From: Macrostomum lignano
Taxonomy: Eukaryota
Assembly: GCA_002269645.1 (NCBI GenBank)
Contig: NIVC01000065.1
Location: 124,001 to 188,000 of the forward strand
Direction: 5' to 3'
Length of the DNA stretch: 64,000 nt
In this document: positions 3,001-45,909 of the stretch, piece after piece
Numbering within the stretch: the first letter of the stretch is position 1
Layout: every line of letters starts with the position of its first letter
Made by a program: the position numbers and the translations under genes
Notes under the pieces: model-generated
Told to the model about the DNA's origin: nothing
Seen by the model: the letters and a program-made list of their open reading frames with translations, nothing else
The model's database searches: none

Positions 3001-6000
3001 TTGACGCTGATCAAAGAAAGTCAAAGCGTGCAATGACTCTCTAGTAGCGAATCTTGTCACGGGTTCAACAGGCAACGAGGAGGCAGAGAGGGAGGGAGAA
3101 GAGGAGGAGGGGAGGCAGAGCTCACCTTCCAATTAGAGTCGCCCAGCTTAGCTACAGTGGCATCAGTCAGCTTATCGGCCAGATCGACACGCGGCACCAG
3201 ATCTTCGACGCCGGCTGCGTCGTCTTCGTCGTCGTCTCCAGCGTCGGCATTGGCGCCTCCGCCAGCAGCGGCTTTGCCAGCAAACTTCCCAGAAGCAGCA
3301 GCAGCAGCGTGCTTCAATCCTCTAGTAGGAGCAGGCGGCTTCTTGTCTTTGATCTGTTCAATCTCCTGGTCGATCTGTTGCAGCAGAGCCGGTTTCTCGT
3401 CGGCTAGCAGGGAGCGCAGACTGTCGCCGATGTACATGTACAGGCTGACCGTCAGGCTAATAGCCGCCTGCCTAATCGCTGGATTAGTGGCGGCGAATCC
3501 TTGTCTCACATATTTAATAAGCTCTTTCGGCGGTATTCGAAGCCCGAACTCTAGCACAGATTGCGCTAGCCAATTCAAAGCTTCGGATTGGTTTTTAGGA
3601 TTTTTCAATTTGAACACCGTCTGGGCCAGCTGGACGCCAACGTAGTCTAGGGAGCAGGCCTCGGCGATGGCTGTCAGACAGGCCTTGGCCGAATCACCGA
3701 CTTTCGCGTCGCCAATTTTATCGTAGATTTCTTCTAGGCAAGCGTCGGCTGAGGTGCGGGTGAACTGGGCATTGGCGGCTAGGTAGGATAGGGTCTCCAA
3801 GCGGAGTTTCAGCACCTGTGGGGTTGTGCCGATTTTAATGGCGATTATTATAAGAAGCTTTTGCAACTTGCACTGTGCCATTACTTATGTTTCCTGACTT
3901 CTCACATTACAATAAACTTCAGTCTCCAAGCTTCACAATCCCCCAAGCTTCCCCAATCCCTAAGCTTCAAAATCTCACAAGATTCCGCAATCCCTAAGCT
4001 TCACAATCTCACAAGCTTCACAATCCCACAAGCATCCTCAATCCCTAAGCTTCACAATCCCCCAAGCTTCACAATCTCACAAGCTTCACAATCCCCCAAG
4101 CTTCACAATCTCACAAGCTTCACAATCCCACAAGCTTCACAATCCCACAAGCTTCCCCAATTCTTAAGCTTCACAATCTCACAAGCTTCACAATCCCACA
4201 AGCATCCCCAATCCCTAAGCTTCACAATCTCACAAGCTTCACAATCCCACAAGCCTCCCCAATCCCTAAGCTTCACAATCTCACAACTTCACAAGCCTCA
4301 CAATCTCCCAAGCTTCCCCAATCCCTAAGCTTCAAAATCTCACAAGCTTCCGCAATCCCTAAGCTTCACAATCTCACAAGCTTCACAATCCCACAAGCAT
4401 CCTCAATCCCTAAGCTTCACAATCCCCCAAGCTTCACAATCTCACAAGCTTCACAATCCCCCAAGCTTCACAATCTCACAAGCTTCACAATCCCCCAAGC
4501 TTCCCCAATCCCTAAGCTTCAAAATCTCACAAGCTTCCCCAATCCCTAAGCTTCACAATCTCACAAGCTTCACAATCCCACAAGCTTCCCCAATCCCTAA
4601 GCTTCACAATCCCACAAGCATCCCCAATCCCTAAGCTTCACAATCTCACAAGCTTCACAATCCCACAAGCATCCCCAATCCCTAAGCTTCACACTCTCAC
4701 AAGCTTCACAATCTCACAAGCTTCACAATCCCACAAGCCTCCCCAATCCCTAAGCTTCACAATCTCACAAGCTTCACAATCCCACAAGCCTCCCCAATCC
4801 CTAAGCTTCACAATCTCACAACTTCACAAGCTTCACAATCCCACAAGCTTCCCCAATCCCTAAGCTTCACAATCTCCCAAGCTTCACAATCCCACAAGCT
4901 TCCACAATCCCTAAGCTTCACAATCCCACAAGCTTCACAATCCCACAAGCTTCCCCAATTCTTAAGCTTCACAATCTCACAAGCTTCACAATACCCCAAG
5001 CTTCCCCAATCCCTAAGCTTCACAATCTCACAAGCTTCACAATCCCACAAGCTTCCCCAATCCCTAAGCTTCAAAATCTCACAAGCTTCCCCAATCCCTA
5101 AGCTTCACAATCTCACAAGCTTCACAATCTCACAAGCTTCACAATCCCACAAGCATCCCCAATCCCTAAGCTTCACACTCTCACAAGCTTCACAATCTCA
5201 CAAGCTTCACAATCTCACAAGCTTCACAATCCCACAAGCATCCCCATCCCTAAGCTTCACAATCTCACAAGCTTCACAATCCCACAAGCATCCTCAATCC
5301 CTAAGCTTCACAATCTCACAACTTCACAAGCTTCACAATCCCACAAGCTTCCCCAATCCCTAAGCTTCACAATCTCCCAAGCTTCACAATCTCCCAAGCT
5401 TCACAATCCCACAAGCTTCCACAATCCCTAAGCTTCACAACCGACACGACTTACAATTTTCACGCTTCACAATCCCCAAACCCCTTCTTTACAATCTCCT
5501 AGAAAGCAATACAATTATTATTAATGCAAATATCAAAATCTAAGTCTTCCCATACCTGAAAATTGTTATCCTTCAGGCCAGGCTTCACAGCGTTAGAGAT
5601 AACTCTAACAGCGGCCTGACACGGTATCTCTGATCCAATCTGATCATTCAGTTTAGTTTTAATCGCTTCCATCGCTTCTAAACGAGATTTCCAAGCTTTA
5701 CTCTCCAATTGTTCAACAATCTCCTTGCCAAACAGATTCGAGCAGGTCTCAACAGCAGTCTCATCCGATATGGTCTGCTCTGTAGGCAGCGAATCTCCCA
5801 GACCTGCGCCGCCACCGACGCCTTTCTTGCCTTTGTCAGTCGATGCGGCAGTTTTCTTCTTGGCAGCCGGGGGAGGCGCGCCAGGCCTCGGACCGCTAGT
5901 GCCAGTTTTTGACCGGCTAGCCGCCGTTCCGGACGCCGCGGAAGATGTCTTGGACAAGGAGGCCGCTGGCGCGGGTGCCGAAGAAGCAGCCTTTGGCGCT

Positions 6001-9000: not shown

Positions 9001-12000
9001 TCTCCACTAACCCCTCCCCTGTTCACTCTCTCCACTAACCCTCCCCTGTTCACTCTCTCCCCACTAACCCTCCCCTGTTCACTCTCTCCCCACTAACCCT
9101 CCCCTGTTTACTCCCCTCTCTCCCCTGACCCTTCCCGACTTCATTCTTCTCACCGACCCAGTTCTTACCTGTACATCTCAATAAGCAGCTGTTTAGTCTC
9201 GTCCCTAGTAACCTTGTCTCTCTCCTCCAGCAGTCTAGCAAACTCTTTCACAATTGGCTTGGGCTGAATAACGCCCCTACCAAATTGGCGTAACGCTTCG
9301 CGCAAAGTTTGAATTGACGCTTGAACAACTTTAGGCTGTTTAGCCTGTAGACCTGCTAGCAGGGCCTCCAGCACAATGTCCTGCTTTTCAATCTCTATGT
9401 ACATTAACAGGATTGACTGGGCTAGCTCTTTAGTGCGAGCTTTGGGCACGCCTAAGCACTTGGTGACCAGCAGCGGGCAGATTTCGCCAGCGGATCTGTG
9501 AGAGGATTAATTTTAAGTAACAGCATCACTATAGCGCAATATTATTATAGTTTAATCCCATCTGGGTCAGTTTAATCCCATCTGGGTCAGTGTAATCCTA
9601 TCTGGGTCAGTGCAATCCTATTTGGGTCAGTGTAATCACATATGGGTCAGTGTAATCCCACCTTGGTCAGTGTAATCCCACCTTGGTCAGTGTAATCCTA
9701 TCTGGGTCAGTGTAATCCCTTCTGGATCAGTGCAATCCCATCAGGATCAGTGTAATCCCATCTGGGTCAGTTTAATCCTTTCTGGGTCAGTGTAATCCCT
9801 TCTGGATCAGTGCAATCCCATCTGGATCAGTGCAATCCCATCAGGATCAGTGCAATCCCATCAGGATCAGTTTAATCCTTTCTGGGTCAGTGTAATCCCT
9901 TCTGGATCAGTGCAATCCCATCTGGATCAGTGTAATCCTATCTGGATCAGTGTAATCCCATCTGGATCAGTGTAATCCCATCTGGATCAGTGTAATCCCA
10001 TCTGGATCAGTGTAATCCTATCTGGATCAGTGTAATCCCATCTGGATCAGTGCAATCAAATCTGGATCAGTGCAATCAAATCTGGATCAGTGCAATCAAA
10101 TCTGTGGGTCAGTGTAATCCCATCTGGATCAGTGTAATCCCATCTGGATCAGTGTAATCCCATCTGGATCAGTGTAATCCCATCTGGATCAGTGTAATCC
10201 CATCTGGATCAGTGTAATCCCATCTGGATCAGTGCAATCAAATCTGGACCAGTGCAATCAAATCTGTGGGTCAGTGTAATCCCATCTGGATCAGTGCAAT
10301 CCCATCTGGATCAGTGTAATCCCATCTGGATCAGTGTAATCCCATCTGGATCAGTGTAATCCCATCTGGATCAGTGTAATCCCATCTGGATCAGTGTAAT
10401 CCCATCTGGATCAGTGTAATCCCATCTGGATCAGTGTAATCCCATCTGGATCAGTGTAATCCCATCTGGATCTGTGCAATCAAATCTGTGGGTCAGTGTA
10501 ATCCCATCTGGATCAGTGCAATCCCATCTGGGTCAGTGTAATCCCATCTGGATCAGTGTAATCCCATCTGGATCAGTGTAATCCCATCTGGATCAGTGTA
10601 ATCCCATCTGGATCTGTGCAATCAAATCTGTGGGTCAGTGTAATCCCATCTGGATCAGTGCAATCCCATCTGGATCTGTGCAATCAAATCTGGGTGGGTC
10701 AGTGTAATCCCATCTGGATCAGTGCAGTCAAATCTGGGTGGGTCAGTGCAATCCCATCTGGATCAGTGCAATCCCATCTGGATCAGTGCAATCCCATCTG
10801 GATCTGTGCAATCAAATATGGGTGGGTCAGTGCAATCCCATCTGGATCAGTGCAGTCAAATCTGGGTGGGTCAGTGCAATCCCTTCTGGATCAGTGCAGT
10901 CAAATATGGGTGGGTCAGTGCAATCCCATCTGGATCAGTGCAGTCAAATATGGGTGGGTCAGTGTAATCCCATCTGGATCAGTGCAGTCAAATACGTGTG
11001 GGTCAGTGCAATCCCATCTGGATCAGTGCAGTCAAATATGGGTGGGTCAGTGCAATCCCTTCTGGATCAGTGCAGTCAAATATGGGTGGGTCAGTGCAAT
11101 CCCATCTGGATCAGTGCAGTCAAATACGTGTGGGTCAGTGCAATCCCTTTTGGATCAGTGCAGTCAAATATGGGTGGGTCAGTGTAATTTCATAAAGTCC
11201 GAGCACTAATACAACAAATAAAACTTCATCTTACTTTCCCGCCACTTTGGCATTCTCAACAAATGCTAAGACAGCGCTGAGAGCAAACTCCTGAGCAACA
11301 GCGTTACTGTCGGAAACCATTTTCTTGAGCAGGCCCAGATAGGAGCTGAACTCCGGACTGTCATCGTCCAGACGACGGAACTCTTTCTCCGCCTCTTGAT
11401 ATCCGGCCTTTCTGGCGTCCCATTTCTGTGGGATTGTGTCAGGTTTTATAACAGCTTTTATTTACAGATATATCTGAATGTTCACCTATCTAAAGATACA
11501 TCAGATCTGAATGTTCACCTATCTAAAGATACATCATATCCGAATGTTCACCTATCTAAAGATACATCAGATCTGAATTTTCACCTATCTAAAGATACAT
11601 CAGATCTGAGTGTTCACCTATCTAAAGATACATCAGATCTGAGTGTTCACCTATCTAAAGATACATCAGATCTGAGTGTTCACCTATCTAAAGATACATC
11701 ATATCCGAATGTTCACCTATCTAAAGATACATCAGATCTGAATGTTCACCTATCTAAAGATACATCAGATCTGAGTGTTCACCTATCTAAAGATACATCA
11801 TATCCGAATGTTCACCTATCTATAGATACATCAGATCTGAATGTTCACCTATCTAAAGATACATCATATCTGAATGTTCACCTATCTAAAGATACATCAT
11901 ATCTGAATGTTCACCTATCTAAAGATACATCATATCTGAATGTTCACCTATCTAAAGATACATCATATCTGAATGTTCACCTATCTAAAGATACATCATA

Positions 12001-13002
12001 TCTGAATGTTCACCTATCTAAAGATACATCATATCTGAATGTTCACCTATCTAAAGATACATCATATCCGAATGTTCACCTATCTAAAGATACATCAGAT
12101 CTGAATGTTCACCTATCTAAAGATACATCAGATCTGAATGTTCACCTATCTAAAGATACATCAGATCTGAGTGTTCACCTATCTGAAGATACATCAGATC
12201 TGAATGTTCACCTACCTATAGATACATCAGATCTGAGTGTTCACCTATCTGAAGATACATCAGATCTGAATGTTCACCTACCTATAGATACATCAGATCT
12301 GAGTGTTCACCTATCTGAAGATACATCAGATCTGAATTTTCACCTATCTGAAGATACATCAGATCTGAATGTTCACCTACCTATAGATACATCAGATCTG
12401 AGTGTTCACCTATCTGAAGATACATCAGATCTGAGTGTTCACCTATCTAAAGATACATCATATCCGAATGTTCACCTATCTAAAGATACATCAGATCTGA
12501 ATGTTCACCTATCTAAAGATACATCAGATCTGAATGTTCACCTACCTATATATACATCAGATCTGAATGTTGACGTACCTAAAGATACATCAGATCTGAA
12601 TGTTCACCTAGCTATAGATACATCAGATTTGAATGTTCACCTAGCTATAGATACATCAGATCTGAACGTTCACCTATCTATAGATACATCATACCTGAAT
12701 TTTCACCTACCTATAGATACATCAGATCTGAATGTTGACGTACCTATAGATACATCATGTCTGAATGTTCACCTAGCTATAGATACATCAGATCTGAATG
12801 TTCACATAGCTATAGATATAGATGCATCAGATTTGAATCGATACCTACTTACACCCATCAAGTCATAGGCTCCATGTAGTGATGAAACCTGACTACAACT
12901 TATTACAATAAATTTCTAGAAATTTACTATAGTCATGCATACCTTGTGTTGGATCTTGTCCTTTGTGCCAAGCTTATTCCAATCATCAACTTCGTCTGTC
13001 AT
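1..13002 (-). CDS. CKAP5: CKAP5 / ch-TOG / XMAP215 / Msps microtubule polymerase, 5' portion (TOG1-TOG4 and the linker towards TOG5); continues beyond the left edge
   Basis: Hand-spliced GT-AG exons: 13002-12943 (MTDEVDDWNKLGTKDKIQHK), 11425-11235 (KWDARKAGYQEAEKEF..VSDSNAVAQ..ENAKVAGK), 9495-9169, ~8183-8000 (VDPYEFLE..KKWQERKEAL; acceptor uncertain), 7077-6628, 6176-5556 (KAWKSRLEAME), 3815-3126, 2865-2458 (NWK|IRKEGL), 1776-1267, 56-1 (VNKMREQRLSDEKKRKVL). Phases are consistent except at the exon 4 acceptor. The W-x-x-R motifs opening each TOG domain match the XMAP215 family. Confidence 0.96.
160..1212. repeat. 24/25-bp minisatellite, CKAP5 intron 9
   Basis: Unit CTTCAGGGGCGATTCTTAATGAGAG. 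Confidence 0.95.
1826..2440. repeat. 22-bp minisatellite, CKAP5 intron 8
   Basis: Unit GAATAGCCAGGCAGATGGATAT. Confidence 0.95.
3925..5440. repeat. 17-bp minisatellite with ~51-bp higher-order structure, CKAP5 intron 6
   Basis: AAGCTTCACAATCTCAC / AAGCTTCACAATCCCAC / AAGCTTCCCCAATCCCT subunits alternate. Confidence 0.95.
6222..6612. repeat. 28-bp minisatellite (dispersed family, variant unit), CKAP5 intron 5
   Basis: Unit CTGAGGATCTGGGAGGCCAACTCAGCAA. Confidence 0.92.
7120..7920. repeat. 22-bp minisatellite, CKAP5 intron 4
   Basis: Unit AGAAGAGAAACCAAGAGTGACC. Confidence 0.95.
8184..9125. repeat. 27-bp C-rich minisatellite, CKAP5 intron 3
   Basis: Unit CCCTCCCCTGTTCACTCTCTCCACTAA. Confidence 0.95.
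9550..11190. repeat. 20-bp minisatellite with polar variant gradient, CKAP5 intron 2
   Basis: Unit TCAGTGTAATCCCATCTGGA; GCAGTCAAATATGGGTGGG variants increase towards 11190. Confidence 0.95.
11465..12840. repeat. 30-bp minisatellite, CKAP5 intron 1
   Basis: Unit GTTCACCTATCTAAAGATACATCAGATCTGAAT-type, 30-bp period. Confidence 0.95.
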
Positions 13003-24139: not shown

Positions 24140-24432
24140 TAAAATATTCTTGACAGCTCGATTCCCACGCTAAAATAGTCGTGTAACTATTGCCACCTGC
24201 TGTTAGACTGGGAGATTGCCTAGCTGTCATTCCGTCAGGCAACTGTTGGCTTCTAGAGGAAACTTTTTCATTTTACGCTTGTGGATTATGCATTTGGGCC
24301 TTTGTTCCTGCAACCGAACTGCGGCCGCTTATCTACTATATAAATGCCAACTTCATTGCAAACTGAGCCAACGCACCATACATTTCTAAAAATTCGGTTT
24401 ATCGACTACATAGCACCCTCGAAACAGTCATT
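24140..24432 (+). promoter_or_regulatory. Promoter block shared by the two secreted-protein paralogs (second copy ~29095-29367), with TATA box
   Basis: Non-coding sequence alignable between copies (e.g. CCTTTGTTCCTGCAACCGAACTGCGGCCGCTTAT..TATATAAATGCCAACTTCA) although the introns are not alignable. Confidence 0.6.
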
Positions 24433-25655
24433 ATGGCAAGCAATTGCAAGCAGCTGTTCTTCTTGGCAGTTCTGGCCGTAGGCATCTCCGCCGCCGTCTG
24501 CGACATGGGCTCTGAGGATGGCGGTGAGCACTATTGAGGCATTACATGTAGTTCGCATCGGCGTCGTTTAAAAGTCTGAGGACAATTGTTGTTACAGACA
24601 TCCTTTGCTCTGTAACTACATGTATTGGTAATTGGTGGTCAATGGCTTTGTTGGTCAATATTAGTATTAGCTTAGCTACTTTCAGATTTTTACCTAATCT
24701 TCAAGCTTCCCCATTTAGCAATGTGGAAGTTCGACGGCGTTAACAATTGCCCATTCTCCTGCACCTTCCCAGCAGTGATGGCCATGCCCTTCTCTACGGT
24801 TGCGACCGTTCGCAACCAGCTGTTGAACTATGTGAACGCGCGCCAGATCTCAGCCCCGGCTAATGTGTTCTGCAGCAACTGCCTCATCAGGGCCTGGAGT
24901 CGCCGGAACAAGTCCAACAGGATGATTAGCTTCCACATCAACAACCTGAACTCCGCTATCCAGCCCTACCCGAAAGTGGTGCAGGACAAGCTGAGGGCTC
25001 TGGCATTCGCCGCCACCACCAGCTTTGAGAACTTCAAGTAACTAACATTCTTCGATCATTTTTATTATTAATATTACCGATATTGGATATGCAAAGAAAG
25101 GCCAATCGCTGAAGGTTAAGCAAATTTGGCCCTGGTTAGTACTTGGTTGAATAGGTTTTTGCTTGTTCCTTAAAACAGCAAGTTTTCACTGTCTCTGTGG
25201 TGAATTTAGCAATCTGTGCAGTTCCAGTGGCTGTTGTACCGTTGACTTCCACTCCTGGTTACCTGGTCCAAGTGTTTACAAGATAGAAATTATAGCTCGT
25301 ACCCAATGAAAGTTACTCAAAAGTACTGTTTGTCCCATTTCTTTGGGTTAATTTTAGCGTCGAGATCCAGAACTCCTACGCTGTCAAGACGGCCTACATC
25401 GGAGCTGCCCGAAAAGTCAACAACATCGTCGACGTTGCCATCCTGGACGTGGACATTGCGGCTAGCCTGGTGCAGAAGTACATCACATTGAGCAGGCGAG
25501 AGTGCAAGAAGACCCTGTTCTGGAAGAAGTGCAAGACTGTTTACTGGAACGAGCCGAGGGGCTATTACGCTAACGAGATCAACGGCATGGTCACCATGCT
25601 GCAGCACGAGGCCTTCAAGATGTTCAAGGAGATCGTCATGTCCATGTCGGGCTAA
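24433..25655 (+). CDS. Uncharacterised secreted protein, paralog A (3 exons, 216 aa)
   Basis: Exons 24433-24523, 24776-25037 (alternative AG gives start 24773), 25358-25655; GT-AG with phases 1 and 2; signal peptide MASNCKQLFFLAVLAVGISAAVC; exon structure identical in paralog B; TATA box at 24337. Confidence 0.85.
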
Positions 25656-25972
25656 TAAGCTATAAGGACTCCATATGAGAAATCTACAGAGATAATGGGA
25701 TGTTGTGTTGGACCCTGCCAAGTCTTACATTCAAATATAATGCACGGCAGTTGAGATACTGCGGTTCGTGTATCGTCGAGTTTGAATAGTGAACCAAGAA
25801 GGCAAACTGCAATAACTTAAGCAAATTTGCAAGAGTTTTGATTTTAACTTTCTACAATACTTCTGTATGGTTTGCTTCCATGTCAAATACTTTTGTCAAT
25901 AAGTCATGCGCTCGCGAATATGGGACAGGTTATTTGAATTATAACAATTAATTTTAATACTCTCGCATTTAT

Positions 25973-26185
25973 AACTCTCCAGTACTTATTCTACCAATAA
26001 TCTCTCCAGTACTTATTCTACCAATAATCTCTCCAGTACTTATTCTTCCAATAATCTCTCCAGTACTTATTCTTCCAATAATCTCTCCAGTACTTATTCT
26101 ACCAATAATCTCTCCAGTACTTATTCTACCAATAATCTCTCCAGTACTTATTCTACCAATACGCTCTCCAGTACTTATTCTACGA
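25973..26185. repeat. 27-bp minisatellite
   Basis: Unit CTCTCCAGTACTTATTCTACCAATAAT, about 8 copies. Confidence 0.9.
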
Positions 26186-26485
26186 GCCTACTAAACGCTT
26201 TCAGTGAGTTCAGTTATAAAGATTATCAAAGCAACCAGCTGGAGAGGTGCACAACCATGCACTTATTCAAGTCAGCTATCAGCTGTCTTGAGGTGACCTT
26301 AGAATTAGTCACAATTAAATTCGCGAGTCATTTTCAGGTCATGATTTAAGTGAAGTTCCAGAAATATTGTGAAAATTTCATGTTCTTAAGTGAGAAATGG
26401 CGACTTGAGAAACAAACTGCTGCTGAACAAAATATGCTATAAATTGATTTATGGTACTCACCAGTGTTGGCTTTAAAGCACGTCG

Positions 26486-28491
26486 TTTTTTGGTTCAGTC
26501 TTTTTTGCCGTTTGGCTTTAGTTTCATGTGCATTCGGAAATTATGATAGCGTTTTACTACTTATCAGTATCCACCATTACTCGTAATTACATCCAAAGGA
26601 CTATTCCGCTAAAGTGCCTACAAATGGGCATGAAGAACTCGTCCTTTATTTTTCAGCGCGTGATGGAGAGCATTTTAAAAAGTGCTTGTCCGAAAAGAAT
26701 GTCACAATCAACGAGAACAAATGCGTCGAGGAGTGCTATGAGGTATCTTTCCTTGGATTCCAAATCTCCGCTACGGGTATCCGACCCGACGCCTAGCTGG
26801 TAGAAAAGATCACACGCATTGCTGCAACGCAGAACAAGAAGGAGCTCGTGCAGTTCCTCCAGGCCGCTACATCAGCTTCAAGCCAGGCCGCTACATCAGC
26901 TTCAAGCCAGGCCGCTACATCAGCTTCAAGCCAGGCCGCTACATCAGCTTCAAGCCAGGCCGCTACATCAGCTTCAAGCCAGGCCGCTACATCAGCTTCA
27001 AGCCAGGCCGCTACATCAGCTTCAAGCCAGGCCGCTACATCAGCTTCAAGCCAGGCCGCTACATCAGCTTCAAGCCAGGCCGCTACATCAGCTTCAAGCC
27101 AGGCCGCTACATCAGCTTCAAGCCAGGCCGCTACATCAGCTTCAAGCCAGGCCGCTACATCAGCTTCAAGCCAGGCCGCTACATCAGCTTCAAGCCAGGC
27201 CGCTACATCAGCTTCAAGCCAGGCCGCTACATCAGCTTCAAGCCAGGCCGCTACATCAGCTTCAAGCCAGGCCGCTACATCAGCTTCAAGCCAGGCCGCT
27301 ACATCAGCTTCAAGCCAGGCCGCTACATCAGCTTCAAGCCAGGCCGCTACATCAGCTTCAAGCCAGGCCGCTACATCAGCTTCAAGCCAGGCCGCTACAT
27401 CAGCTTCAAGCCAGGCCGCTACATCAGCTTCAAGCCAGGCCGCTACATCAGCTTCAAGCCAGGCCGCTACATCAGCTTCAAGCCAGGCCGCTACATCAGC
27501 TTCAAGCCAGGCCGCTACATCAGCTTCAAGCCAGGCCGCTACATCAGCTTCAAGCCAGGCCGCTACATCAGCTTCAAGCCAGGCCGCTACATCAGCTTCA
27601 AGAGAGGCCGCTACATCAGCTTCAAGCCAGGCCGCTACATCAGCTTCAAGCCAGGCCGCTACATCAGCTTCAAGCCAGGCCGCTACATCAGTTTCAAACC
27701 AGGCCGCTACATCAGTTTTAAACCAGGCCGCACTCAATGCTTGGAATGCCAAGATTATTAAAGCCGATTTCATCTCATACTTGCAAAGGATCCTCTTACA
27801 TCATCGCATCTCTTCCACATCCCAGGGCAAAAGTCCCACTGAACTGGTATTTGGCAGACAGCTGCGAGTTCCAGTCGCACTCACAATATGAGCAAGGATG
27901 TACCAACCGATCAGCTCGAAACTTCCCAGCCAGGTGGATTTCCTGATGAACCAAGGCCGCAACACCGCTTGAATTGGGTCCTCGACGGTGAATCGCTACG
28001 CCTAGCAAGCACCAACCAGCTTGCCCCATACGAATTACAGGATGAGGATGATGCTGAAAATGCCCCGGCCGCTGACGTCGAGCCACATCATGGACCGGAG
28101 AACGAGACCGCTGCCGGTGATCCACAGGATCCAGAGCCAGTTGGGATTGCGCAACAACTGCGACGTAGCAACCGCCAGAAGTGAGCCCCCTGAGCCCCCT
28201 GACGCTTGCCTGATTCCTGAAGGCGCTCAAGCACTGTGCGAATGTGTTTTAAAGACTTTTAAAGACGACACTCTCCCCAATGCCATACCACAACCCTTCC
28301 CTTTGATGAGTTCTTATTGTTGTCCTTTAGCATATCTTATATCTTGTAATTCACAGCCTTGCTAACAAAGGGTGCATGTTGTAGCCGTAATCAGACTACG
28401 AGCTGCGATTTTTTGGTTCAGTGTATTTTGTCTTTTGGCTTATGTTTTATGTGCGTTCCGAATTTATGCAGCGTTCTACTACTTATCAGTA
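26486..28491 (+). mobile_element. Internally deleted, degenerate Ty3/gypsy LTR retrotransposon
   Basis: RT fragments LQMGMKNSSFIFQRVME and INENKC..VSFLGFQISATGIRPD..KKELVQFL; integrase C-terminal part HHRISSTSQGKSPTELVFGRQLR; tail LRRSNRQK; diverged ~83-bp direct repeats at 26486-26569 and 28409-28491 (probable LTR remnants). Confidence 0.8.
26858..27730 (+). repeat. Near-perfect 21-bp tandem array (~41 copies) inside the gypsy remnant
   Basis: Unit CAGGCCGCTACATCAGCTTCAAGC-type; only one internal variant (27601) and two degenerate terminal units. Confidence 0.97.
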
Positions 28492-29367
28492 GCAAGTAAG
28501 TAAAGTAGCTCTATTTATTCCTACCAAGTTTCTATTTACAGCATATGAATTGACAACTATATATTGCTAACGGACTAACTATTAGTTAAACAATTCTTAA
28601 CCGTCGCCTCCGAAGCAACGAGATTTACCGACCATATTACGTACATATATATTAAATAGAATTATGATCACCAAATGAGTAATGTTCTGTCCATTACCGA
28701 AATCGTTTTCGATTGATAGAATAATTTTTAACAGTAAAATTACTGCATGCTCAATTTCATTAAAGCAGATCTACCTTACTCTGTACTTTGAGGCAAATTA
28801 GTTTGGTAAGGCACGATTAGGCGAAATGTAGTGAAGATACTGCATAGCACTGAAACTTCATGGTTGCTTTCTGTCATGCAAGCTGCATACGAACTTTCAA
28901 CTCGTCTACAGTCGACTAAACACCATGGTTGTCTTATAGATGAACCCCCCCCCAAGTTGAGCTAGTTAAACTCTGACAGAATCAAATACCACTTGTGGTA
29001 GCCATATCATGCCAGTTCAACGTGTTACGCGATTCAAATTCTAATTACAAGAATTAGCTGCTAATTTACAAACGCTGGAAAAAAGTTTTCTTACTCACTT
29101 GACAGCTCCGTTGGCTCGATTCCCACGCAGAAATCGTGTAAATTTGCCACCTGCAGCCGACTGGGAGATAGCGGAGTCGGCAGCCTGGCTGTCGCTTTGT
29201 CAGACAACTGTTGGCCGAATAGGCATTCGATTCCGCTGGGCCCTTTGTTCCTGCAACCGAACTGCGGCCGCTTATCGACTATATATAAATGCCAACTTCA
29301 CTGCAAGCTGAGACAACGCAGCAGACTTTCTGAAAATTCGGCTAATAGCACCCTAGAAACAGTCATT

Positions 29368-30454
29368 ATGGCAAGCAATTGCAAGCAGCTTTTCTTCCTG
29401 GCAGTTCTGGCCGTAGGCATCTGCGCCGCCGTCTGCGACACGGGCTCTGAGGATGGCGGTGAGCACTTTTCAGGCTTGGCTTTGAGCAGAGAAAGGGTTA
29501 ACTTGGGTGCTAATTTTCGATGTAACAGGGCACTGTCGATTTTGCAGACGCATCCTGCTGGTTAATCGATGGAATTAAAGTCTAACTAACTTAGGGGTTT
29601 ATTAATTTATTAGAGCTAGCCTACCTGTTCTAAGGAATGGAATCAATTAGAAACTATCATGAATCTTCCCAACAGTGATGGCCATGCCCTTCTCTACCGC
29701 CGCGACCGTCCGCAACCAGCTGTTGACCTATGTGAACGCGCGCCAGATCTCAGCCCCCGCTAATGTGTTCTGCAGCAACTGCCTCATCAGGGCCTGGAGT
29801 CGCCGGAACAAGTCCAACAGGATGATTAGCTTCCACATCAACAACCTGAACTCTGCTATCCAGCCCTACCCGAAAGTGGTGCAGGACAAGCTGAGGGCTC
29901 TGGCGTTCGCTGCCACCACCAGCTTTGAGAACTTCAAGTAACTACATTGATTGCCTTAATTTACTAGTACGAACGATTACTGAGTTGTGTTGCTCAGAGA
30001 ATGAAGGAAGATTTTCTGTTTATTATGCATTAGGAGCAATGCGTCAGGACTGGGTTGACTGTTCACTGACGACGTATATTCGAAATTTTAACATGCCCGT
30101 TAGAGACTTTGAGACTTGTCTTTAAACTATCCTAATACGCCCACACCAAATCCTAGCGTCCAAGTCCAGAACTCCTACGCCGTCAAGACCGCCTACATCG
30201 GAGCTGCCCGAAAAGTCAACAACATCGTCGACGTTGCCATCCTGGATACGAACATTGTGGCTGCCCTGGTGCCAAAGTACATCACCATGAGCAGGCGACA
30301 GTGCAAGAAGATCCTGTTCTGGAAGAAGTGCAAAACTGTTTATTTCAACGTGCTGAGGGGCTATTACGCTAACGAGATCAACGGCATGGTCACCATGTTG
30401 CAGCACGAGGCCTTCAAGATGTTCAAGGAGATCGTCATGTCTATGCCGGCTTAA
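29368..30454 (+). CDS. Uncharacterised secreted protein, paralog B (3 exons, 216 aa)
   Basis: Exons 29368-29458, 29676-29937, 30157-30454 have the same lengths (91/262/298 nt) as paralog A; introns are diverged while exons are conserved and in frame. Confidence 0.86.
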
Positions 30455-31359
30455 TCTGGAGAATGAATGATTGCGTTGATTATGTTAGATCAATGCTATA
30501 TTTGAAGATTTGAATTCAAATATAATATTTTGAGACAGTGTGCATTAGTGCAAATACAGCAAAATATGCTGGTTGGGAGCAGGCAAATAGCTTGAACTTT
30601 TTCTAAGAGTTTTACTTTTGCTTTAATGAATCTCCTTCGAACAAAATCAGAATCATATTCAAAGGCTTGCACTACACCATTTTACCCTCGATTTTGAACA
30701 AGGAGAACTTCGAAACTGACAAACTCCTCTTCAATATTGACACTCTATGGTCGAGCACTCAAAATCTACAATCAATATTGACAGATCAAGCTTCAATTTT
30801 GACAAACTATGGTTCAATTTTGACTATGCACGTTTAGTCAACTTCTCCTGGGAGAATTCGGTAACAAAGTAATCCAATGAAAGTCTGAACGGGGCTGAAG
30901 TGAGCTGTGCAAAATCAGCTTATTCTGACTTTGCTTTTTGGATCTACAAGTATTGATAAAATTTATTTTTCTCCATCCTTTACACACACAGACTAAAATA
31001 GCATGACTGGTTGGGCTGCAAAGTCCGATTCTACGAGCGTATTTTGACAGAGTTGCTTCAAAACTGACACTCTATGGTTTGTGTACCCAAAAAGTCCGCT
31101 TCATTTTTGACAACTCCGAATCAATATTGAACAGTTTACAATCGATTTTGACTAAGACATTTTTTGAAATAGATTTTGAAAATTTTTACTAAGATTTCTC
31201 TCTTGAGGGGGGGGGGTACTTGCTATTTGGAAGAGGGGGTACTGGCTGCATGGATCTACGAGTACGAGTACATGTATGGGAATCTTTCTATCCAGGGATG
31301 CTTGCTAGAGTCCCTGCTCTCTCAAGGGACTCTAGCAAAAGGCCGGTCATTTAACATCC

Positions 31360-31599: not shown

Positions 31600-32249
31600 A
31601 ATCACGAAAAATCGGCATCGTCGAGATATTCAACGATTCTCCTCGGGGTGTCTGGTGGAAAAAACCACCAACACTGGCAATTTTTTCTGCTCACAAAATC
31701 TCACCATGAAACCACGTCGGCTCAGCAAATTATGCGAATCAGTCGCAGGGACTTTTGCTCTTAGCATCCCAGGCAACAGGGTCCCCTTCATTACCGTCTG
31801 GAGCATCGGCGGCGACCGTCGGGACCTTCAACAAAAGCACCCGATCGGCATCTCAGAGACGGCTGCGTTCCCAAAACTGAAATGGAAGAATCCTCTTCTG
31901 CATGCAGCATCCAGACAGTAGACATAATTGGTAAATGAAATGGACGATGGCGACCGTCTAGGCTGACCTGTAGACATACAGGCGACCTTCGGGACCTTCA
32001 ACGGAGTGCCACCGCGCGGCTTCGACGAGCTGGCACCCCCAACATCGTGATTTTTCTATCAAGGCACCAAACCAGGCATGTCTGCATATTATACAATAGT
32101 CCTGTTTCATGTTCAGCATTCAGCTCTGTCTGGACGACCTTTGGGACCTTCAACGGAGTGCCACCACGCGGCCCCGACGAGCTGGCACCACCAACATCGT
32201 GATTTTTCTATCAAGGCACCAAACCAGGCATATCTGCATATTATACAAT
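31600..32249 (+). mobile_element. Inverted copy of the 5' half of the same piggyBac-like element
   Basis: Reverse complement of 34447-35210, including the 152-bp internal repeat unit; near-identical over 31760-32249. Confidence 0.85.
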
Positions 32250-32254
32250 GCTTT

Positions 32255-33170
32255 TGCACCATGTTAAGCTGGGGAGTTACAGATTCAACTCACGACTGAA
32301 AAATATAAAATTTTTCAAAATTTTTTAAAAAATCATCAACAAGTTCATCTCGGACAAAATCACCAAACAAAAACCTGAGCAATCTTACCACTGAAGAATT
32401 TGAACCCATTCTGCGTCGATCCCCTTCCTCGGACCTCCATCTCTAGCCTTTAAAAACAGAATGCGTAGGTTATTCTTTGCCTCTTTCAATCGTAACATCC
32501 GGGTCGTCTTCCACACGAACAAGATTGGGAACTTTGTTAGCAGACTAAAGTCACGTGTTCCTTGTACTCTGCGTGCAGGTGTTGTCTACCAATTTAACTG
32601 CTCTGTGGACCAGAGCGTCTCCTATGTGGGGAAAACCAAAAGACACCTACACACGAGGATCAGGGAACACTGGCTCAAACCATCTGCTATACAAACTCAC
32701 CTCCTTGAATGCACTAACTGCAAGGACTGCAAACCGGAAGAACACTTTAAAATCATTGACCAAAGCCATACTGACGCCAAACTTAGAATTCTCGAGGCCC
32801 TGCACATAAAAGCTCAGACCCCGAATCTCAACACCCAATTACAACATAGTGGTGCAGGTCACGTTCTCAGCGTTTTCTGAACAGTGAGTGACACAGTCGT
32901 GTACGCTGTGTACACTTAACTTGACGTTCAGTTACTTAAGCTACCGCCCCTGATTCTGCCTTTTGACCACTGGACAAGAATTTTGTACATTTGGTTTAAT
33001 TTTCAATCTCAATCTATAATTTTCTCTCCTACCTACCTATGTATGTTGTTAAAGCCAAGTTGTAATCAATTGTTTTCAATCTTACCCTCCTTACCTGTGT
33101 ACGTTGCAAAAACCAATATTTAATCAATCGTTTTCAATCTCACTTTCTCAAATCGTTCTAATAAAATCCT
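32255..33170 (+). mobile_element. 5'-truncated Penelope-like retroelement (RT thumb remnant + GIY-YIG endonuclease)
   Basis: SIPFLGPPSLAFKNRMRRL..IRVVF then VVYQFNC..SYVGKTKRHLHTRIREH..SAIQTHLLEC..HFKII..LRILEALHIKAQTPNLNTQ (ORF 32461-32880). 3' boundary approximate. Confidence 0.88.
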
Positions 33171-33199
33171 GACTAAAAAATGATATTACAGCAAATTCA

Positions 33200-35371
33200 G
33201 TGCAGAAGGATTTGAACACCGACACAGACACAAAAGCGGAGTCAATTTTCATCGCAGTGTGTCTTCAGCAAATTCCTTCGTCACACAGGCAACACTTCCT
33301 TGTTGTTCTCGTCCTTTGACTTTTGTCTCGCGCATGTTGCACAGCGCTTTCTGCCACCAACTGACACCACAGCCGCCGCTTCACGTGCCTGTTCCTTCAT
33401 TTGTTCGTCGTTGATTTGACAACCTGCAAGCTGGATCATCAGCCGGTGATGATTGGACCGATTCTGAAGAAGAGCGGCCGATTGCGGGCGCTCCTCGATC
33501 AGAGGTTGCAGAAGTTGCGCAGCTGCCTTGCGCTGGAACTCGTTGGGATATTTCGGCGAGGGGCAGAGCTCCGGGTGCGCCAGTCTCCACATAGCAGCGG
33601 CATTCACAGCTGCTATGTTTAATACGCCGCCGGAGAAGATTGCCTTCTCGCATGAGCGGGACTTTCGCTTGCAGTCGGATGTGCGGAACATCCTGTTGCA
33701 GGTGTTCGTGCCACTCTTGGTAGAATTGTAGTACGTGCCTATTGCTACAGACTTGCCATTGGGAAGCAATTGTCTGTCGTGGTGCATGGTGGACAGCAAC
33801 ATCACGTTTCGGCCCGCCTTGGGGCAGTAGGACACACACGTGAGTTCCTCAGAAAACCGGAATTCGCTCGTGTGTGGAGCCATGGTTTTAGTTGAATTCT
33901 CGAGATCGGCTGGTAGGCCACCACGGGTGCGCATCTCTGTTCCAAAAACTGGGAATCCCATTTCTCGGTACAAGTGATTGGCCAGCGCAGGACTCGAGAA
34001 GAATCTGTCACATGTGATGTTGTGTCCTCTGAATGGATCAGCAAAGCGGCAAACGACTTGCTCACCACTCCACACCTCTGAGCCCTTCGGCTCCAAGCAT
34101 CAAATCCCTGTGATGCAAAAGTAGTGGACAGCAGTGTCCTTTGCCAGTGCAGATTTCCGCATTGAACACATAGCGGATGTCCATGTCATTCTGAATCTCT
34201 GGATTCCCAGCCGATGTCAGCAGGAACAGCTTGGCACCATTGCGACGGGCTTCTCCTTCAGAAAGACCGTGAAGTCACAGTTCACACCCCAGTATAGACA
34301 ACCAGAGTTTCGTCGACGCAGAGGTAGGCCCAAAAAGGACAGGATGGCGCAGCTGAATGACAAAGGTGTCGGATGCCGTAGAATTAGTCCGTTGTGGCAG
34401 TCCGCTGACGATGTTCGGCAGTTTCGAATTTTACATCATGCCGGACCATTGTATAACATGCAGACATGCCTGGTCTGGTGTCTTGATAGAAAAATCACGA
34501 TATTGGGGGTGCCAGCTCGTCGGGGCCGCGTGGTGGCACTCCGTTGAAGGTCCCGAAGGTCGTCCAGACAGAGCTGAATGCTGAACATGAAACAGGACCA
34601 TTGTATAATATGCAGACATGCCTGGTGTGGTGCCTTGATAGAAAAATCACGATGTTGGTGGTGCCAGCTCGTCGGCCGCGCGGTGGCACTCCGTTGAAGG
34701 TCCCGAAGGTCGTCCAGACAGAGCTGAATGCTGAACATGAAGCAGGACCATTGTATAATATGCAGACATGCCTGGTTTGGTGCCTTGATAGAAAAATCAC
34801 GATGTTGGTGGTGCCAGCTCGTCGGGGCCGCGTGGTGGCACTCCGTTGAAGGTCCCGAAGGTCGCCTGTAAGTCTACAGGTCAGCCTAGAGGGTCGCCAT
34901 CGTCCATTTCATTTACCAATTATGTCTACTGTCTGGATGCTGCATGCAGAAGAGGATTCTTCCATTTCAGTTTTGGGAACGCAGCCGTCTCTGAGATGCC
35001 GATCGGGTGCTTTTGTTGAAGGTCCCGACGGTCACCGCCGATGCTCCAGACGGTGATGAAGGGGACCTGGTGCCTGGGATGCTGAGAGCAGAGGCCTCTA
35101 CGACAGATGGACCCAGATTATTGAGCCAATATGGGTTATACAGTGTAGTGTTGGTTGCCCTTGCCACCAGTGTCTTCGACAAGAATCGTTGAATATCTCG
35201 ACGATGCTGACGTCGGATGACTTTGAAAGTTAGTTTGTCGGAAAGGGCGAAAAATTTGGATCCATATGGTCGACTTCTACGAAAATCGGTAATTCTGTTG
35301 GCGAGCTATCGTGAAATTTGAAATACACACTCCGTGGTCTTTCCCCATGGGGAAAAATACGTGGACTTTAA
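33200..35371 (-). mobile_element. Degenerate piggyBac-like (PGBD4-type DDE) transposon
   Basis: Frameshifted YLCVDETL (first Asp), NITCDRFFSS (second Asp), YNSTKSGTNTCN (third Asp changed to Asn), C-terminal Cys-rich RKRCATC..CCLC. TTAA at 35368-35371 may mark the 5' end. Confidence 0.85.
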
Positions 35372-43842: not shown

Positions 43843-45240
43843 GGGGGTGCCAAATCTGAGTCAGAGGGGCGCCAAATCTGAGTCAGAGGAGCGCCAAATC
43901 TGAGTCAGAGGGGCACCAAATCTGAGATAGAGGAGCGCCAAATCTGAGTCAGAGGGGCGCCAAATCTGAGTCAGAGGGGCGCCAAATCTGAGATAGAGGA
44001 GCGCCAAATCTGAGACAGAGGGGCGCCAAATCTGAGTCAGAGGGGCGCCAAATCTGAGTCAGAGGGGCGCCAAATCTGAGTCAGAGGGGTGCCAAATCTG
44101 AGTCAGAGGGGCGCCAAATCTGAGTCAGAGGAGCGCCAAATCTGAGTCAGAGGGGCGCCAAATCTGAGTCAGAGGGGCGCCAAATCTGAGTCAGAGGGGC
44201 GCCAAATCTGAGTCAGAGGAGCGCCAAATCTGAGACAGAGGGGCGCCAAATCTGAGTCAGAGGGGCGCCAAATCTGAGTCAGAGGGGCGCCAAATCTGAG
44301 TCAGAGGGGTGCCAAATCTGAGTCAGAGGGGCGCCAAATCTGAGTCAGAGGAGCGCCAAATCTGAGTCAGAGGGGCGCCAAATCTGAGATAGAGGAGCGC
44401 CAAATCTGAGTCAGAGGAGCGCCAAATCTGAGTCAGAGGGGCGCCAAATCTGAGATAGAGGAGCGCCAAATCTGAGACAGAGGGGCGCCAAATCTGAGTC
44501 AGAGGGGCGCCAAATCTGAGTCAGAGGGGCGCCAAATCTGAGATAGAGGAGCGCCAAATCTGAGTCAGAGGAGCGCCAAATCTGAGTCAGAGGGGCGCCA
44601 AATCTGAGATAGAGGAGCGCCAAATCTGAGACAGAGGGGCGCCAAATCTGAGTCAGAGGGGCGCCAAATCTGAGACAGAGGGGCGCCAAATCTGAGACAG
44701 AGGGGTACCAAATCTGAGACAGAGGGGCGCCAAATCTGAGACAGAGGGGTACCAAATCTGAGACTGGGAGCGCCAAATCTGAGTCAGAGGGGCGCCAAAT
44801 CTGAGATAGAGGAGCGCCAAATCTGAGTCAGAGGAGCGCCAAATCTGAGTCAGAGGGGCGCCAAATCTGAGATAGAGGAGCGCCAAATCTGAGTCAGAGG
44901 GGCGCCAAATCTGAGATAGAGGAGCGCCAAATCTGAGTCAGAGGAGCGCCAAATCTGAGTCAGAGGGGCGCCAAATCTGAGATAGAGGAGCGCCAAATCT
45001 GAGTCAGAGGAGCGCCAAATCTGAGTCAGAGGGGCGCCAAATCTGAGATAGAGGAGCGCCAAATCTGAGACAGAGGGGCGCCAAATCTGAGTCAGAGGGG
45101 CGCCAAATCTGAGACAGAGGGGCGCCAAATCTGAGACAGAGGGGTACCAAATCTGAGACAGAGGGGCGCCAAATCTGAGACAGAGGGGTACCAAATCTGA
45201 GTCAGAAAAGCGCCAAATCTGAGTCAGTGAGCGCCAAATC
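43843..45240. repeat. 22-bp minisatellite (~63 copies) upstream of the Vav-like gene
   Basis: Unit GGCGCCAAATCTGAGTCAGAGG with TGAGATA and TGAGACA variants. Confidence 0.96.
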
Positions 45241-45909
45241 TCAATATAATATTATAAGCAACTCAAGCAAAACTGAGCAGACACAAACTATCAGTCGATT
45301 ATTTGAGCGCCACGGACAGGTAGCCAAACCAGCTGAGATTGTGGACTCGGAATTTCTACAAAACAGCACAAACAACTGCAGAAGCGCACGGCTTGCCTGA
45401 CTCAGAGATAAGAAGGCACAGAAAAATGCAAAGAGATTTTTTTCCAAATATCGTCGAAAAATCTGCTTCTCCTAGAAGAAGGCAATCCGTTCGTAAACAC
45501 AGAACCAAATAATAATTACTAAATCGATTTCAGATTTGCAACTCAAATTATTCTAAAAATTATATTTCAGTTTTAACATTGTACTTACTAGAGTTAGTGA
45601 ATCAAATTACTCTACTATTAGTAGAGTTCAACTAGGAAAATAAATCAAACAGTTTTTTTATTCGAGTTAAAATAAAATAAAAATTCGTTCGATGGATCTG
45701 CTAATTGACGAAATGGCTAAAGTTAACCCCGGATATTTCTGACACGTACAGTTTACAAGACACTCGGACTGCGGCCCCTTTCCAGTGGTTAATCTTTTTC
45801 TAGAAGAGCCGGAGCCCAACAAGACCCACCGGCTGATAAGGACCATATAAGTCAGTCTGAGCTTCTAACCTGGCACTGACTCACCGCGCAACTTTCTTTC
45901 GCTGAAAAC

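Follow-up and report, generated by a model that had tools for sequence, protein, structure and literature searches.

A tandem gene pair of Macrostomum lignano and a family of predicted secreted proteins with an undescribed domain and a conserved cysteine-closed finger

Introduction

What is encoded by a tandem pair of genes in the flatworm Macrostomum lignano whose products match no catalogued protein family, and through which part of their structure might these products act? The pair lies in a 64-kb stretch of contig NIVC01000065.1 (positions 124,001 to 188,000 of the forward strand; this whole stretch is referred to below as the window) and consists of copy A, Mlig018188.g2, and copy B, Mlig019930.g1, both on the + strand. 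Judged against Pfam, NCBIfam and PDB, the two proteins belong to a domain family that has neither a Pfam model nor a solved structural relative. Each of them is predicted from its sequence to comprise a signal peptide and a single undescribed alpha+beta domain of ~185 residues, and the element of this domain that is best conserved across the family is a cationic and aromatic hairpin closed by two cysteines. An initial annotation, made from the letters of the window alone, had singled out this hairpin and had read the genes as two intact three-exon paralogues of equal exon sizes, a description that coordinates, 651-nt frames and splice sites all bear out.

Two intact three-exon genes with transcript support

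The two genes are built alike, each having three exons of 91, 262 and 298 nt, GT..AG introns of phases 1 and 2, and a coding sequence (CDS) of 651 nt for 216 residues. Exon 1 of copy A (24433-24523, + strand, 91 nt) supplies the start codon and the signal-peptide-like MASNCKQLFFLAVLAVGISAAVC, up to G30, before a phase-1 GT donor opens intron 1 (24524-24775, 252 nt, GC 0.42), of which only the first 17 nt resemble the corresponding intron of copy B. Exon 2 (24776-25037, 262 nt) encodes an N-terminal helix, the C63-x-x-C66 loop, the long strand b1, two short helices and the start of b2, and is followed by the phase-2 intron 2 (25038-25357, 320 nt), which is unalignable with its counterpart in copy B. 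The remainder of the domain, comprising strands b2-b6, the PRG motif and the C-terminal helix, comes from exon 3 (25358-25655, 298 nt including the stop codon), within which positions 25497-25535 encode the hairpin, R165-E-C167-KKTLFWKK-C176-K177. In copy B, also on the + strand, the exons lie at 29368-29458 (91 nt), 29676-29937 (262 nt) and 30157-30454 (298 nt including the stop codon), the introns at 29459-29675 (217 nt) and 29938-30156 (219 nt), and the hairpin, R165-Q-C-KKILFWKK-C-K, at 30296-30334. The mature flatworm proteins of ~22 kDa are basic, with isoelectric points (pI) of 9.6 and 9.9 and net charges of +10 and +14 for the two copies. No further family copies or pseudogene fragments were detected in the window by tblastn, and the introns of the two copies are not repeated elsewhere in it.

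Both genes are represented in GenBank. The protein of copy A is 100% identical to PAA92044.1 ('hypothetical protein BOX15_Mlig018188g2'), whose locus, NIVC01000065.1 138433-159655, is present verbatim inside the window, while that of copy B lies wholly inside PAA92045.1 (Mlig019930.g1), the deposited CDS of which is marked 'partial' and begins further upstream, at window position 29233. For this assembly, the annotation in GenBank consists of RNA-seq-derived transcript models only, built with StringTie/TACO, TBONE and TransDecoder (PMC5730564), so that transcripts support both copies, although reads may be mis-assigned between exons that are 90-97% identical. A complete lack of expression, which would have spoken against a functional pair, is thus not what the gene models for both copies indicate.

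Two UniProt models, A0A1I8HF09 and A0A1I8INH9, begin at an intronic ATG (MWKFDGVNNCPFSCTFPA…) within copy A intron 1 (window 24718-24775) and read on into exon 2, giving a 204-residue protein that has no signal peptide. This start is probably an artefact of gene prediction on an older assembly; it could also represent an alternative first exon.

A family extending from flatworms to microbial eukaryotes

That the family had gone unrecognised was confirmed, since neither the single proteins nor the family profile gave a significant match in Pfam, NCBIfam or PDB sequences, and no well-characterised housekeeping family was found there. The matches below threshold, PhiKZ_MCP (E 0.011), Mucin (E 0.26), LIC_10463 (E 0.027) and PqqC (3hnh, E 1.7), are chance matches. 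The pair does not make up the whole family, as had first appeared: both copies are members, but an exhaustive phmmer search of 1.84 billion representative proteins returned 54 relatives at E<=1e-3, 11 of them at E<=1e-10, and these include four further M. lignano subfamilies and lectin-fused proteins of protists. A patchy distribution extending to protists, which had been raised as a possibility, is what these relatives display; organism look-up covered 20 of the 54. A word-indexed protein search with the family alignment retrieved three proteins, none of them additional. Both window proteins align over their full length with the ~185-residue family domain in an alignment of 38 sequences. Secretion through a signal peptide is the fate predicted in common for the whole family, as a hydrophobic N-terminal leader, called from N-terminal hydrophobicity in the sequence, is present in both window proteins and in nearly all complete members, with the domain directly behind it; the hairpin of the members falls at residues ~145-170.

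Among the flatworm subfamilies, Mlig006903 (35% identity, phmmer E 3e-27) combines a signal peptide, two WSC domains and the family domain. It shares with the pair the domain itself, the position and phase of the last intron, and a tandem arrangement with a single-domain member, namely its chromosomal neighbour Mlig017382/Mlig010958, and differs from the pair in its two N-terminal WSC domains. Two other subfamilies, Mlig028772/Mlig009218 and Mlig030048, have lost exactly the b5-b6 hairpin while keeping the rest of the domain. Neighbour-joining groups the five M. lignano subfamilies into a single clade (85% bootstrap support), and the codon position and phase of intron 2 are common to all M. 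lignano subfamilies compared, even to those that are only 30-40% identical. The single clade and the conserved intron together imply long residence and diversification in the flatworm lineage from one ancestor, which may have inherited the gene, other animals having lost it, or acquired it by transfer.

The other relatives come from metagenome and read-archive assemblies and are secreted proteins of microbial eukaryotes (for example P0011, P0015, P0020 and P0022), which match at E 1e-19 to 1e-4 and carry the same C-x8-C finger and PRG-x4-E motif. Like the flatworm proteins, they have the domain at the N-terminus directly after the signal peptide; unlike them, most have no CxxC, and many continue into a C-terminal B_lectin, DUF5648 or GH16 domain or into Cys-less repeats. 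Their genomes are AT-rich, with a GC content of 26-32%. One member, P0020, is encoded by a transcript of the Logan assembly ERR11260154 (L001, 36-1979) that is 27% GC, bears a poly(A) tail, and contains six in-frame TGA codons read as Trp in a frame ending with TAA. Another member gene lies on a 16-kb, 26%-GC contig (L007) of densely packed called genes, where the sole named relative of an encoded eIF3a is that of the ciliate Litonotus, at 31% identity. The label 'ciliate-like' is given because of this eIF3a match, the AT-richness and the one transcript with TGA as Trp; the non-flatworm hosts would accordingly be ciliate-like microbial eukaryotes, an inference from few data points. The reading of TGA as Trp in the ERR11260154 transcript amounts to a non-standard nuclear code, as has been reported for some ciliates.

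The domain is found with several partners, which are B_lectin (nine members), WSC, DUF5648 and GH16, placed C-terminally in the microbial-eukaryote proteins. Additionally, at least 10 proteins carry one or two copies of an unannotated module of ~180 residues, which proved to be a Cys-less distant version of the family domain itself (hhalign probability 81%, E 1.2e-5) and is the commonest unannotated partner. The CxxC motif (C63-x-x-C66) that had been pointed out in the pair is indeed present in both window proteins, but it does not characterise the family: its cysteines are present or absent as a pair and, a few other sequences apart, are confined to the flatworm clade, which makes a local disulfide probable.

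Names attached to some family models in UniRef were also assessed. The designation 'Lipocalin' for a copy B model (A0A1I8HFF9) was rejected, there being no Pfam match, no occurrence of the PS00213 pattern, and a six-stranded open sheet in place of an eight-stranded barrel; 'Pept_C1', the name of another family-member model, is supported by no search. An AIG1-fused UniRef model prompted a survey of the gene context of other members, and no immune-gene context was found around them in the GenBank annotation.

Predicted fold

An AlphaFold2 model calculated from the 38-sequence alignment has a mean predicted local distance difference test score (pLDDT) of 94.3 and a predicted template modelling score (pTM) of 0.85. 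Its elements follow the order a0-b1-a1-a2-b2..b6-a3, with six long antiparallel strands and four helices: an N-terminal helix, a strand of 17 residues, two short helices, a five-strand meander with strands of 11-15 residues, and a C-terminal helix of 25 residues. The features ascribed to the pair before any modelling, which were a signal peptide, a beta-rich core, a Cys-closed hairpin and a C-terminal helix, are all either visible in the sequence or recovered in the model. For the Cys-less sister domain, the model reaches a pLDDT of 82 and has the same order of elements.

The comparison of the model with known structures, which had been suggested as a check, was carried out with Foldseek. Against PDB, the family domain gave nothing at E<=1e-3; the best fold matches are two streptococcal proteins of unknown function (E 5e-3, template modelling (TM) scores of 0.24/0.33), followed by a lower tail of TBP-like, SecB, helix-grip and BPI-type folds at TM<=0.24. 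The sister domain likewise gave nothing in PDB at E<=1e-3, its best match being CapZ alpha (E 9e-3, TM 0.26). Among predicted structures of viral proteins in BFVD, by contrast, five matches were obtained at E 3e-9 to 4e-6, with probability 1.00 and TM 0.43-0.56, all of them uncharacterised Mimiviridae proteins: those of Borely moumouvirus (A0A6G6ADX5), Edafosvirus (A0A3G4ZYQ2), Hyperionvirus (A0A3G5A862) and Terrestrivirus (A0A3G4ZN21), and one further. These proteins, of 187-266 residues, share the predicted fold, but they are only 7-13% identical to the family in structural alignments and none is among the nameable HMMER hits.

Several known folds and families were considered for membership and rejected. 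No Foldseek match in PDB at E<=1e-3 places the domain with the TBP-like, SecB, helix-grip, CapZ or MHC-like folds. For the Bet v 1/START (SRPBCC) helix-grip superfamily, the Foldseek values are E 0.02-0.1 and TM<=0.24, with no Pfam match, and for BPI/LBP/TULIP proteins the match to BPIFA1 (6baq) has E 0.06 and TM 0.18, again with no Pfam match. Pore formers of the aerolysin/ETX-MTX2/natterin-like type gave no Pfam or Foldseek match, and the short hairpin of the family bears charges on both of its faces instead of being alternately amphipathic.

The conserved cysteine finger

Family-wide, conservation concentrates on strands b5 and b6 and on the start of the last helix. The signature of the family is a Cys-x8-Cys hairpin, R-x-C-K-K-[IV]-L-F-[FW]-K-K-C-K, then PRG-x4-E, which is found in both window copies; written as a broader consensus, the finger reads R-x-C-[KH]-[RK]-[IV]-[LWF]-[FL]-[FW]-K-K-C-[KH], continued after 4-6 residues by [P]-R-G-[FY]-x3-E. 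Both C167 and C176 are present in 36 of the 38 aligned members and are jointly absent from two finger-less flatworm proteins, while R185 is found in 37/38, G186 in 36/38 and E191 in all 38. In the model, the hairpin makes a two-residue turn at L171-F172, and the two cysteines are opposed across it. The hairpin picked out at the beginning thus proves to be the best-conserved element of the whole family, and in its predicted structure it forms a finger stapled by a disulfide, hydrophobic at the tip and basic on both faces. The neighbouring b3-b4 turn, preceded by a conserved A-R-[KR], lies at that end of the sheet too. The loss of the hairpin in two flatworm subfamilies that keep the rest of the domain indicates that it is an appendage, not a core element.

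Divergence of the paralogues and gene conversion

How two such genes have stayed alike can be followed in their exons and introns. Copies A and B are 96% identical in exon 1, 97% in exon 2 and 90-91% in exon 3 at the nucleotide level, whereas their introns and 3' flanks score like shuffled sequence in both global and local alignment, the exceptions being the first 17-32 nt of intron 1 and an exact 13-mer in the 3' flanks. The claim that the introns are unalignable is therefore correct apart from the beginning of intron 1. The proteins differ at 19 of 216 residues, and 15 of the 19 differences fall in exon 3, including SLVQK/ALVPK and YWNEP/YFNVL, which agrees with the clustering around the hairpin that had been described; on the model, the exon 3 differences sit on b2, on b4-b6 and at the C-terminus, most of them near the finger, on b4, b5 and b6. 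Synonymous divergence (dS) between the copies is 0.156 overall (0.13-0.20) and nonsynonymous divergence (dN) is 0.045, giving a dN/dS of 0.29. Calculated by exon, as had been recommended, dN/dS is 0.08 for exon 2 and 0.41 for exon 3. Both paralogues are under purifying selection.

The whole tandem pair occurs again on NIVC01000064.1 (locus L009) with the same exon sizes, and all four genes, that is A, B and both homeologues, have intact 651-nt frames and canonical splice sites. Between the window and L009, the introns are 94-96% identical (94% for copy A intron 1) and the upstream regions 99%. The M. lignano line has undergone a recent genome doubling, and its DV1 assembly is highly redundant (PMC5730564); the likeness of L009 to the window locus fits either. 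Since the introns of A and B are non-homologous while homeologous introns are 94-96% identical, the A/B duplication must long pre-date the doubling and is no product of the assembly.

A count of site patterns over the four genes showed no fixed paralogue-specific difference in exon 1, five in exon 2 (four of them within the first 35 nt) and 24 in exon 3. Exon 2 additionally has two sites with a 'by locus' pattern and one with a 'crosswise' pattern, and the homeologous B copy carries an exon 1 identical to that of A. The low dS beside non-homologous introns, together with these mosaic site patterns, points to exon-limited gene conversion as well as purifying selection. Selection, to which the likeness of the exons had first been ascribed, is consistent with the dN/dS of 0.29 but is not sufficient, as it cannot account for near-identical synonymous sites beside non-homologous introns. 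From the sequences, conversion confined to the still-similar exons would be the simplest account of the A/B likeness. Codon-level constraint may add to the likeness of the exons. In the coding sequence, GC content at third codon positions (GC3) is 0.83, compared with 0.38-0.42 for GC in the introns.

Shared flanking sequence

The two copies also share sequence ahead of their start codons. The block of copy A (24156-24432, + strand) contains a 38-nt element at 24296-24333 and TATATAAAT at 24337-24345, and continues as 5' untranslated region to an AG 5 nt before the ATG; that of copy B (29114-29367, + strand) contains the 38-nt element at 29239-29276 and TATATATAAAT at 29280-29290. About 277 nt upstream can be aligned, with 73% identity in local alignment (shuffle score 20) and 82% mean column identity in a MAFFT alignment. 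The 38-nt element has 0-1 mismatch between the copies and occurs in the window only at these two sites, and a TATA(TA)TAAAT element stands 88-96 nt (A) and 78-88 nt (B) ahead of the start codons. The initial annotation had taken this region for a conserved promoter with a TATA box. Conservation of the block stands, but a core-promoter role does not follow, as the deposited copy B model starts at 29233, 47 nt upstream of the TATA element of that copy.

Directly ahead of the ATG, both copies have …AAACAG, then TCATT (24427-24432 and 29362-29367), which contains an acceptor-like AG 5 nt upstream. About 39% of M. lignano genes are trans-spliced to a spliced leader. The deposited copy B model is uncut at this AG, which argues against trans-splicing there.

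Downstream, the motif ATTCAAATATAAT occurs at 25729-25741, 74 nt past the stop codon of copy A, and at 30514-30526, 60 nt past that of copy B, on the + strand in both cases. This 13-mer, which had been noticed as a shared 3' motif, is exact in the two copies and occurs exactly twice in the 64-kb window, where 0 occurrences would be expected by chance. Its position suggests a candidate polyadenylation-signal region.

Likeness to known systems

A cationic hairpin closed by disulfides recalls a group of secreted defence peptides. Anti-lipopolysaccharide factors (ALF) of Limulus and crustaceans, tachyplesin, protegrin and arenicin are secreted and basic, and their active part is a disulfide-closed cationic aromatic beta-hairpin; in ALF it is part of a small alpha+beta domain, where an N-terminal helix precedes it. 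The resemblance of the pair to ALF and the hairpin peptides is one in manner of working only and serves as a lead. In contrast to ALF, which has ~20 residues between the cysteines, the family has eight, and its domain is about twice the size. Membership of the ALF family was rejected, as there is no significant Pfam family, no PDB-sequence match and nothing ALF-like in the top 50 Foldseek hits. The helix-grip/SRPBCC and BPI/TULIP folds resemble the domain in their order of a strand, two helices, a meander sheet and a long C-terminal helix; they differ from it in structural comparison (TM 0.14-0.24, E>=0.02), and the domain has longer strands, an extra N-terminal helix and no sequence signal of either.

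Proposed mode of action and its alternatives

The function proposed here, to which a probability of roughly 40% is assigned, is that of a surface-docking domain acting through its cationic, hydrophobic-tipped finger. A rigid platform of sheet on helices would attach itself to other cells or particles where their surface is negatively charged, for instance an anionic membrane or an acidic glycan. Contact would be made by the protruding, disulfide-stapled beta-hairpin, whose hydrophobic tip is L-F-W/F and both of whose flanks are rich in Lys and Arg; the other conserved basic turn (A-R-K) is found at this end of the sheet as well. In the protist proteins, C-terminal lectin modules would aim the docking module, whereas the flatworm proteins that consist of the domain alone would be secreted in abundance by glands and act by themselves, whether in defence, in prey handling, or on a mating partner or its sperm. 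The two copies would be kept alike by purifying selection and exon-limited gene conversion, and their differences on b4-b6 around the finger suggest slightly different target preferences. The guess made in the initial annotation, that the protein may be membrane-active, antimicrobial, a toxin or adhesive, would be compatible with the basic pI, the finger and the lectin fusions.

Several points weigh against surface docking as the function. Protrusion of the finger and exposure of both of its faces are deduced from strand register and residue pattern only, and the invariant R, G and E may serve the structure only. The median pI of the domain is 9.2, but about a quarter of the family domains are acidic (pI 4.9-6.8), so that overall positive charge is not universal, though the KK flanks of the finger are. 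Fusion to lectins fits adhesive, matrix or wall-associated roles as well. Mlig018188, Mlig019930, Mlig026559, Mlig006903 and Mlig017382 are not mentioned in the M. lignano full texts and supplements searched. The giant-virus link is one of predicted structures only, and a scan of IMG/VR with the finger pattern gave 184 raw matches, none of which was confirmed by tblastn.

A more far-reaching version of surface docking would make the domain a new fold and the 'warhead' of lectin-aimed, surface-attacking proteins in ciliates and their giant viruses, gained once by the Macrostomum lineage through horizontal transfer from a microbe or virus of this kind and then domesticated, with introns and a signal peptide exon, into at least five subfamilies, some of them in gland secretions including prostate or seminal fluid. 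In this full form the scenario appears quite unlikely.

Among the alternatives, the proposal that the pair are reproductive secretions overlaps with surface docking, as it concerns where and why the proteins act, not how. They would be prostate (seminal-fluid) or other genital-gland proteins, transferred at mating, acting on the antrum of the partner or on sperm and undergoing the rapid lineage-specific expansion that such genes typically show. Arbore et al. described a strongly tail-specific, prostate-gland-restricted transcript, RNA815_80.4, with 'two WSC carbohydrate binding domains' and otherwise unannotated, and found that its RNA interference (RNAi) abolishes staining by the prostate antibody MPr-1 (2015, PMC4490696); this two-WSC transcript is also covered in PMC5977470. 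The described architecture matches that of Mlig006903, two WSC domains and the family domain, and Mlig006903 adjoins a single-domain member; among named organisms, moreover, the family is found only in M. lignano. However, RNA815_80.4 is equated with Mlig006903 only tentatively, on the published description of its domains, and the prostate lead concerns Mlig006903, not Mlig018188 or Mlig019930. The identifiers of the pair are absent from supplements on reproduction-related and tail-specific genes, though these files may use other identifiers. A dN/dS of 0.29 is unlike that of fast-evolving seminal proteins, and protist and viral relatives cannot have such a role. A reproductive function of the pair is regarded as unlikely.

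It is improbable that the proteins act as a self-assembling matrix or packaging material of dense secretory bodies, such as rhabdites, gland granules, ciliate extrusomes, cyst walls or giant-virus surface layers, polymerising by edge-to-edge pairing of sheets with the basic finger bound to acidic mucopolysaccharide. Tandem arrays of two or three copies of the fold in protist proteins would suit such a material, as would the strong codon bias (GC3 0.83), which suggests high expression, and the occurrence of the fold in predicted structures of giant viruses. CapZ subunits join their sheets edge to edge, and CapZ is the weak best PDB resemblance of the sister domain. Yet the proteins have no low-complexity or repeat segments typical of matrix proteins, and partners such as lectin, GH16 and WSC point to a protein that recognises foreign or extracellular glycans, not to one that packs with itself. 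A carrier of lipids or small hydrophobic ligands, in which the curved sheet and the long C-terminal helix enclose a pocket of helix-grip or BPI/TULIP type and the finger aids docking to membranes for loading and unloading, must likewise be considered improbable. The order of elements, b-a-a-b5-a, resembles that of helix-grip proteins, and many low-ranked Foldseek matches in PDB are to SRPBCC/PR-10/PYR1/START/PRELID/CoxG proteins or BPIFA1, but those matches are insignificant (E 0.02-0.1, TM 0.14-0.24, root-mean-square deviation 13-25 A), no lipid-binding family is matched in Pfam, the strands of 11-17 residues are much longer than those of helix-grip proteins, and the Cys-less sister domain best resembles CapZ alpha instead, also insignificantly. 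That the genes are non-functional, being a recent segmental duplicate, a product of assembly redundancy or a decaying pair whose likeness reflects youth, is hardly credible: the high redundancy of DV1 (PMC5730564) and the near-identical second locus on NIVC01000064.1 would favour it, but four intact frames with canonical splice sites, the dN/dS of 0.29, a duplication that pre-dates the genome doubling according to the intron comparison, and relatives with the same motif across eukaryotes speak against it.

Surrounding DNA

The spacer between the copies (25656-29113) has its main features at 25971-28491, where a minisatellite of eight 27-bp units is followed by a degenerate remnant of a long terminal repeat (LTR) retroelement. 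At ~26.66-26.86 kb the spacer carries a reverse-transcriptase tail with a weak RVT_1 match (E 0.009, below the Pfam cut-off). The middle of the remnant is replaced by a minisatellite of 36 units of 24 bp (26859-27731, 99% matches), beyond which, at ~27.75-27.9 kb, stands a tail (…SPTELVFGRQLRVP…) that is integrase-like by its motif. The remnant is bracketed by 84-bp direct repeats at 26486-26569 and 28409-28491, which are 84.5% identical.

The window as a whole is dense in minisatellite arrays, with units of 14-64 bp, often in 30-90 copies. Over 30 of the arrays score above 300; examples of arrays lie at 161-1236, 3927-5440, 9549-11028, 11472-12818, 43844-45241 and 53791-54747. Related units recur among the arrays, as with the 28-bp AGCAACTGAGGATCTG.GAGGC at 6224, 48829, 51119 and 55373. 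The gene pair sits in one of the few stretches of unique sequence. Inverted repeats at 31847-32269 and 34430-35000, with 327 nt that are 97% complementary and tandem units of ~150 bp inside, enclose ~2.2-2.5 kb, and such an arrangement, at 31847-35000, resembles a foldback element or a DNA transposon with its terminal inverted repeats.

Further genes were observed near other members. At L009 4857-7112 (NIVC01000064.1), an apparently intact gene for a 751-residue retrotransposon polyprotein, with RVT_1, RNase H, integrase zinc finger and rve domains, is encoded on the strand opposite to the homeologous copy A, ~3 kb upstream of it; in the locus record of the window (L010), the annotation has no gene called at the matching position. 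At L011 304-2328 (NIVC01002045.1), a gene for 433 residues with a C-5 cytosine DNA methyltransferase domain (PF00145) lies ~5.7 kb upstream of Mlig006903.

Significance

Both sequences had been public before as hypothetical proteins. The novelty lies in recognising the family, in its signature and confident predicted fold, and in its spread over a flatworm, ciliate-like protists and, by predicted shape, giant viruses. The locus itself provides a clean, small case of concerted evolution limited to exons, as exons 1 and 2 are nearly free of fixed paralogue differences. The distribution is a possible case of cross-kingdom or viral gene flow.

If the model and the distribution hold, a compact undescribed domain is common to a laboratory flatworm, ciliate-like protists and Mimiviridae. 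Should it be true that the finger binds microbial or gamete surfaces, the domain would represent a new scaffold among disulfide-stapled cationic hairpins. M. lignano, in which RNAi, in situ hybridisation and transgenesis are available, is a tractable animal for finding the function of the domain, and that function, once found, would annotate dozens of opaque proteins of protists and giant viruses.

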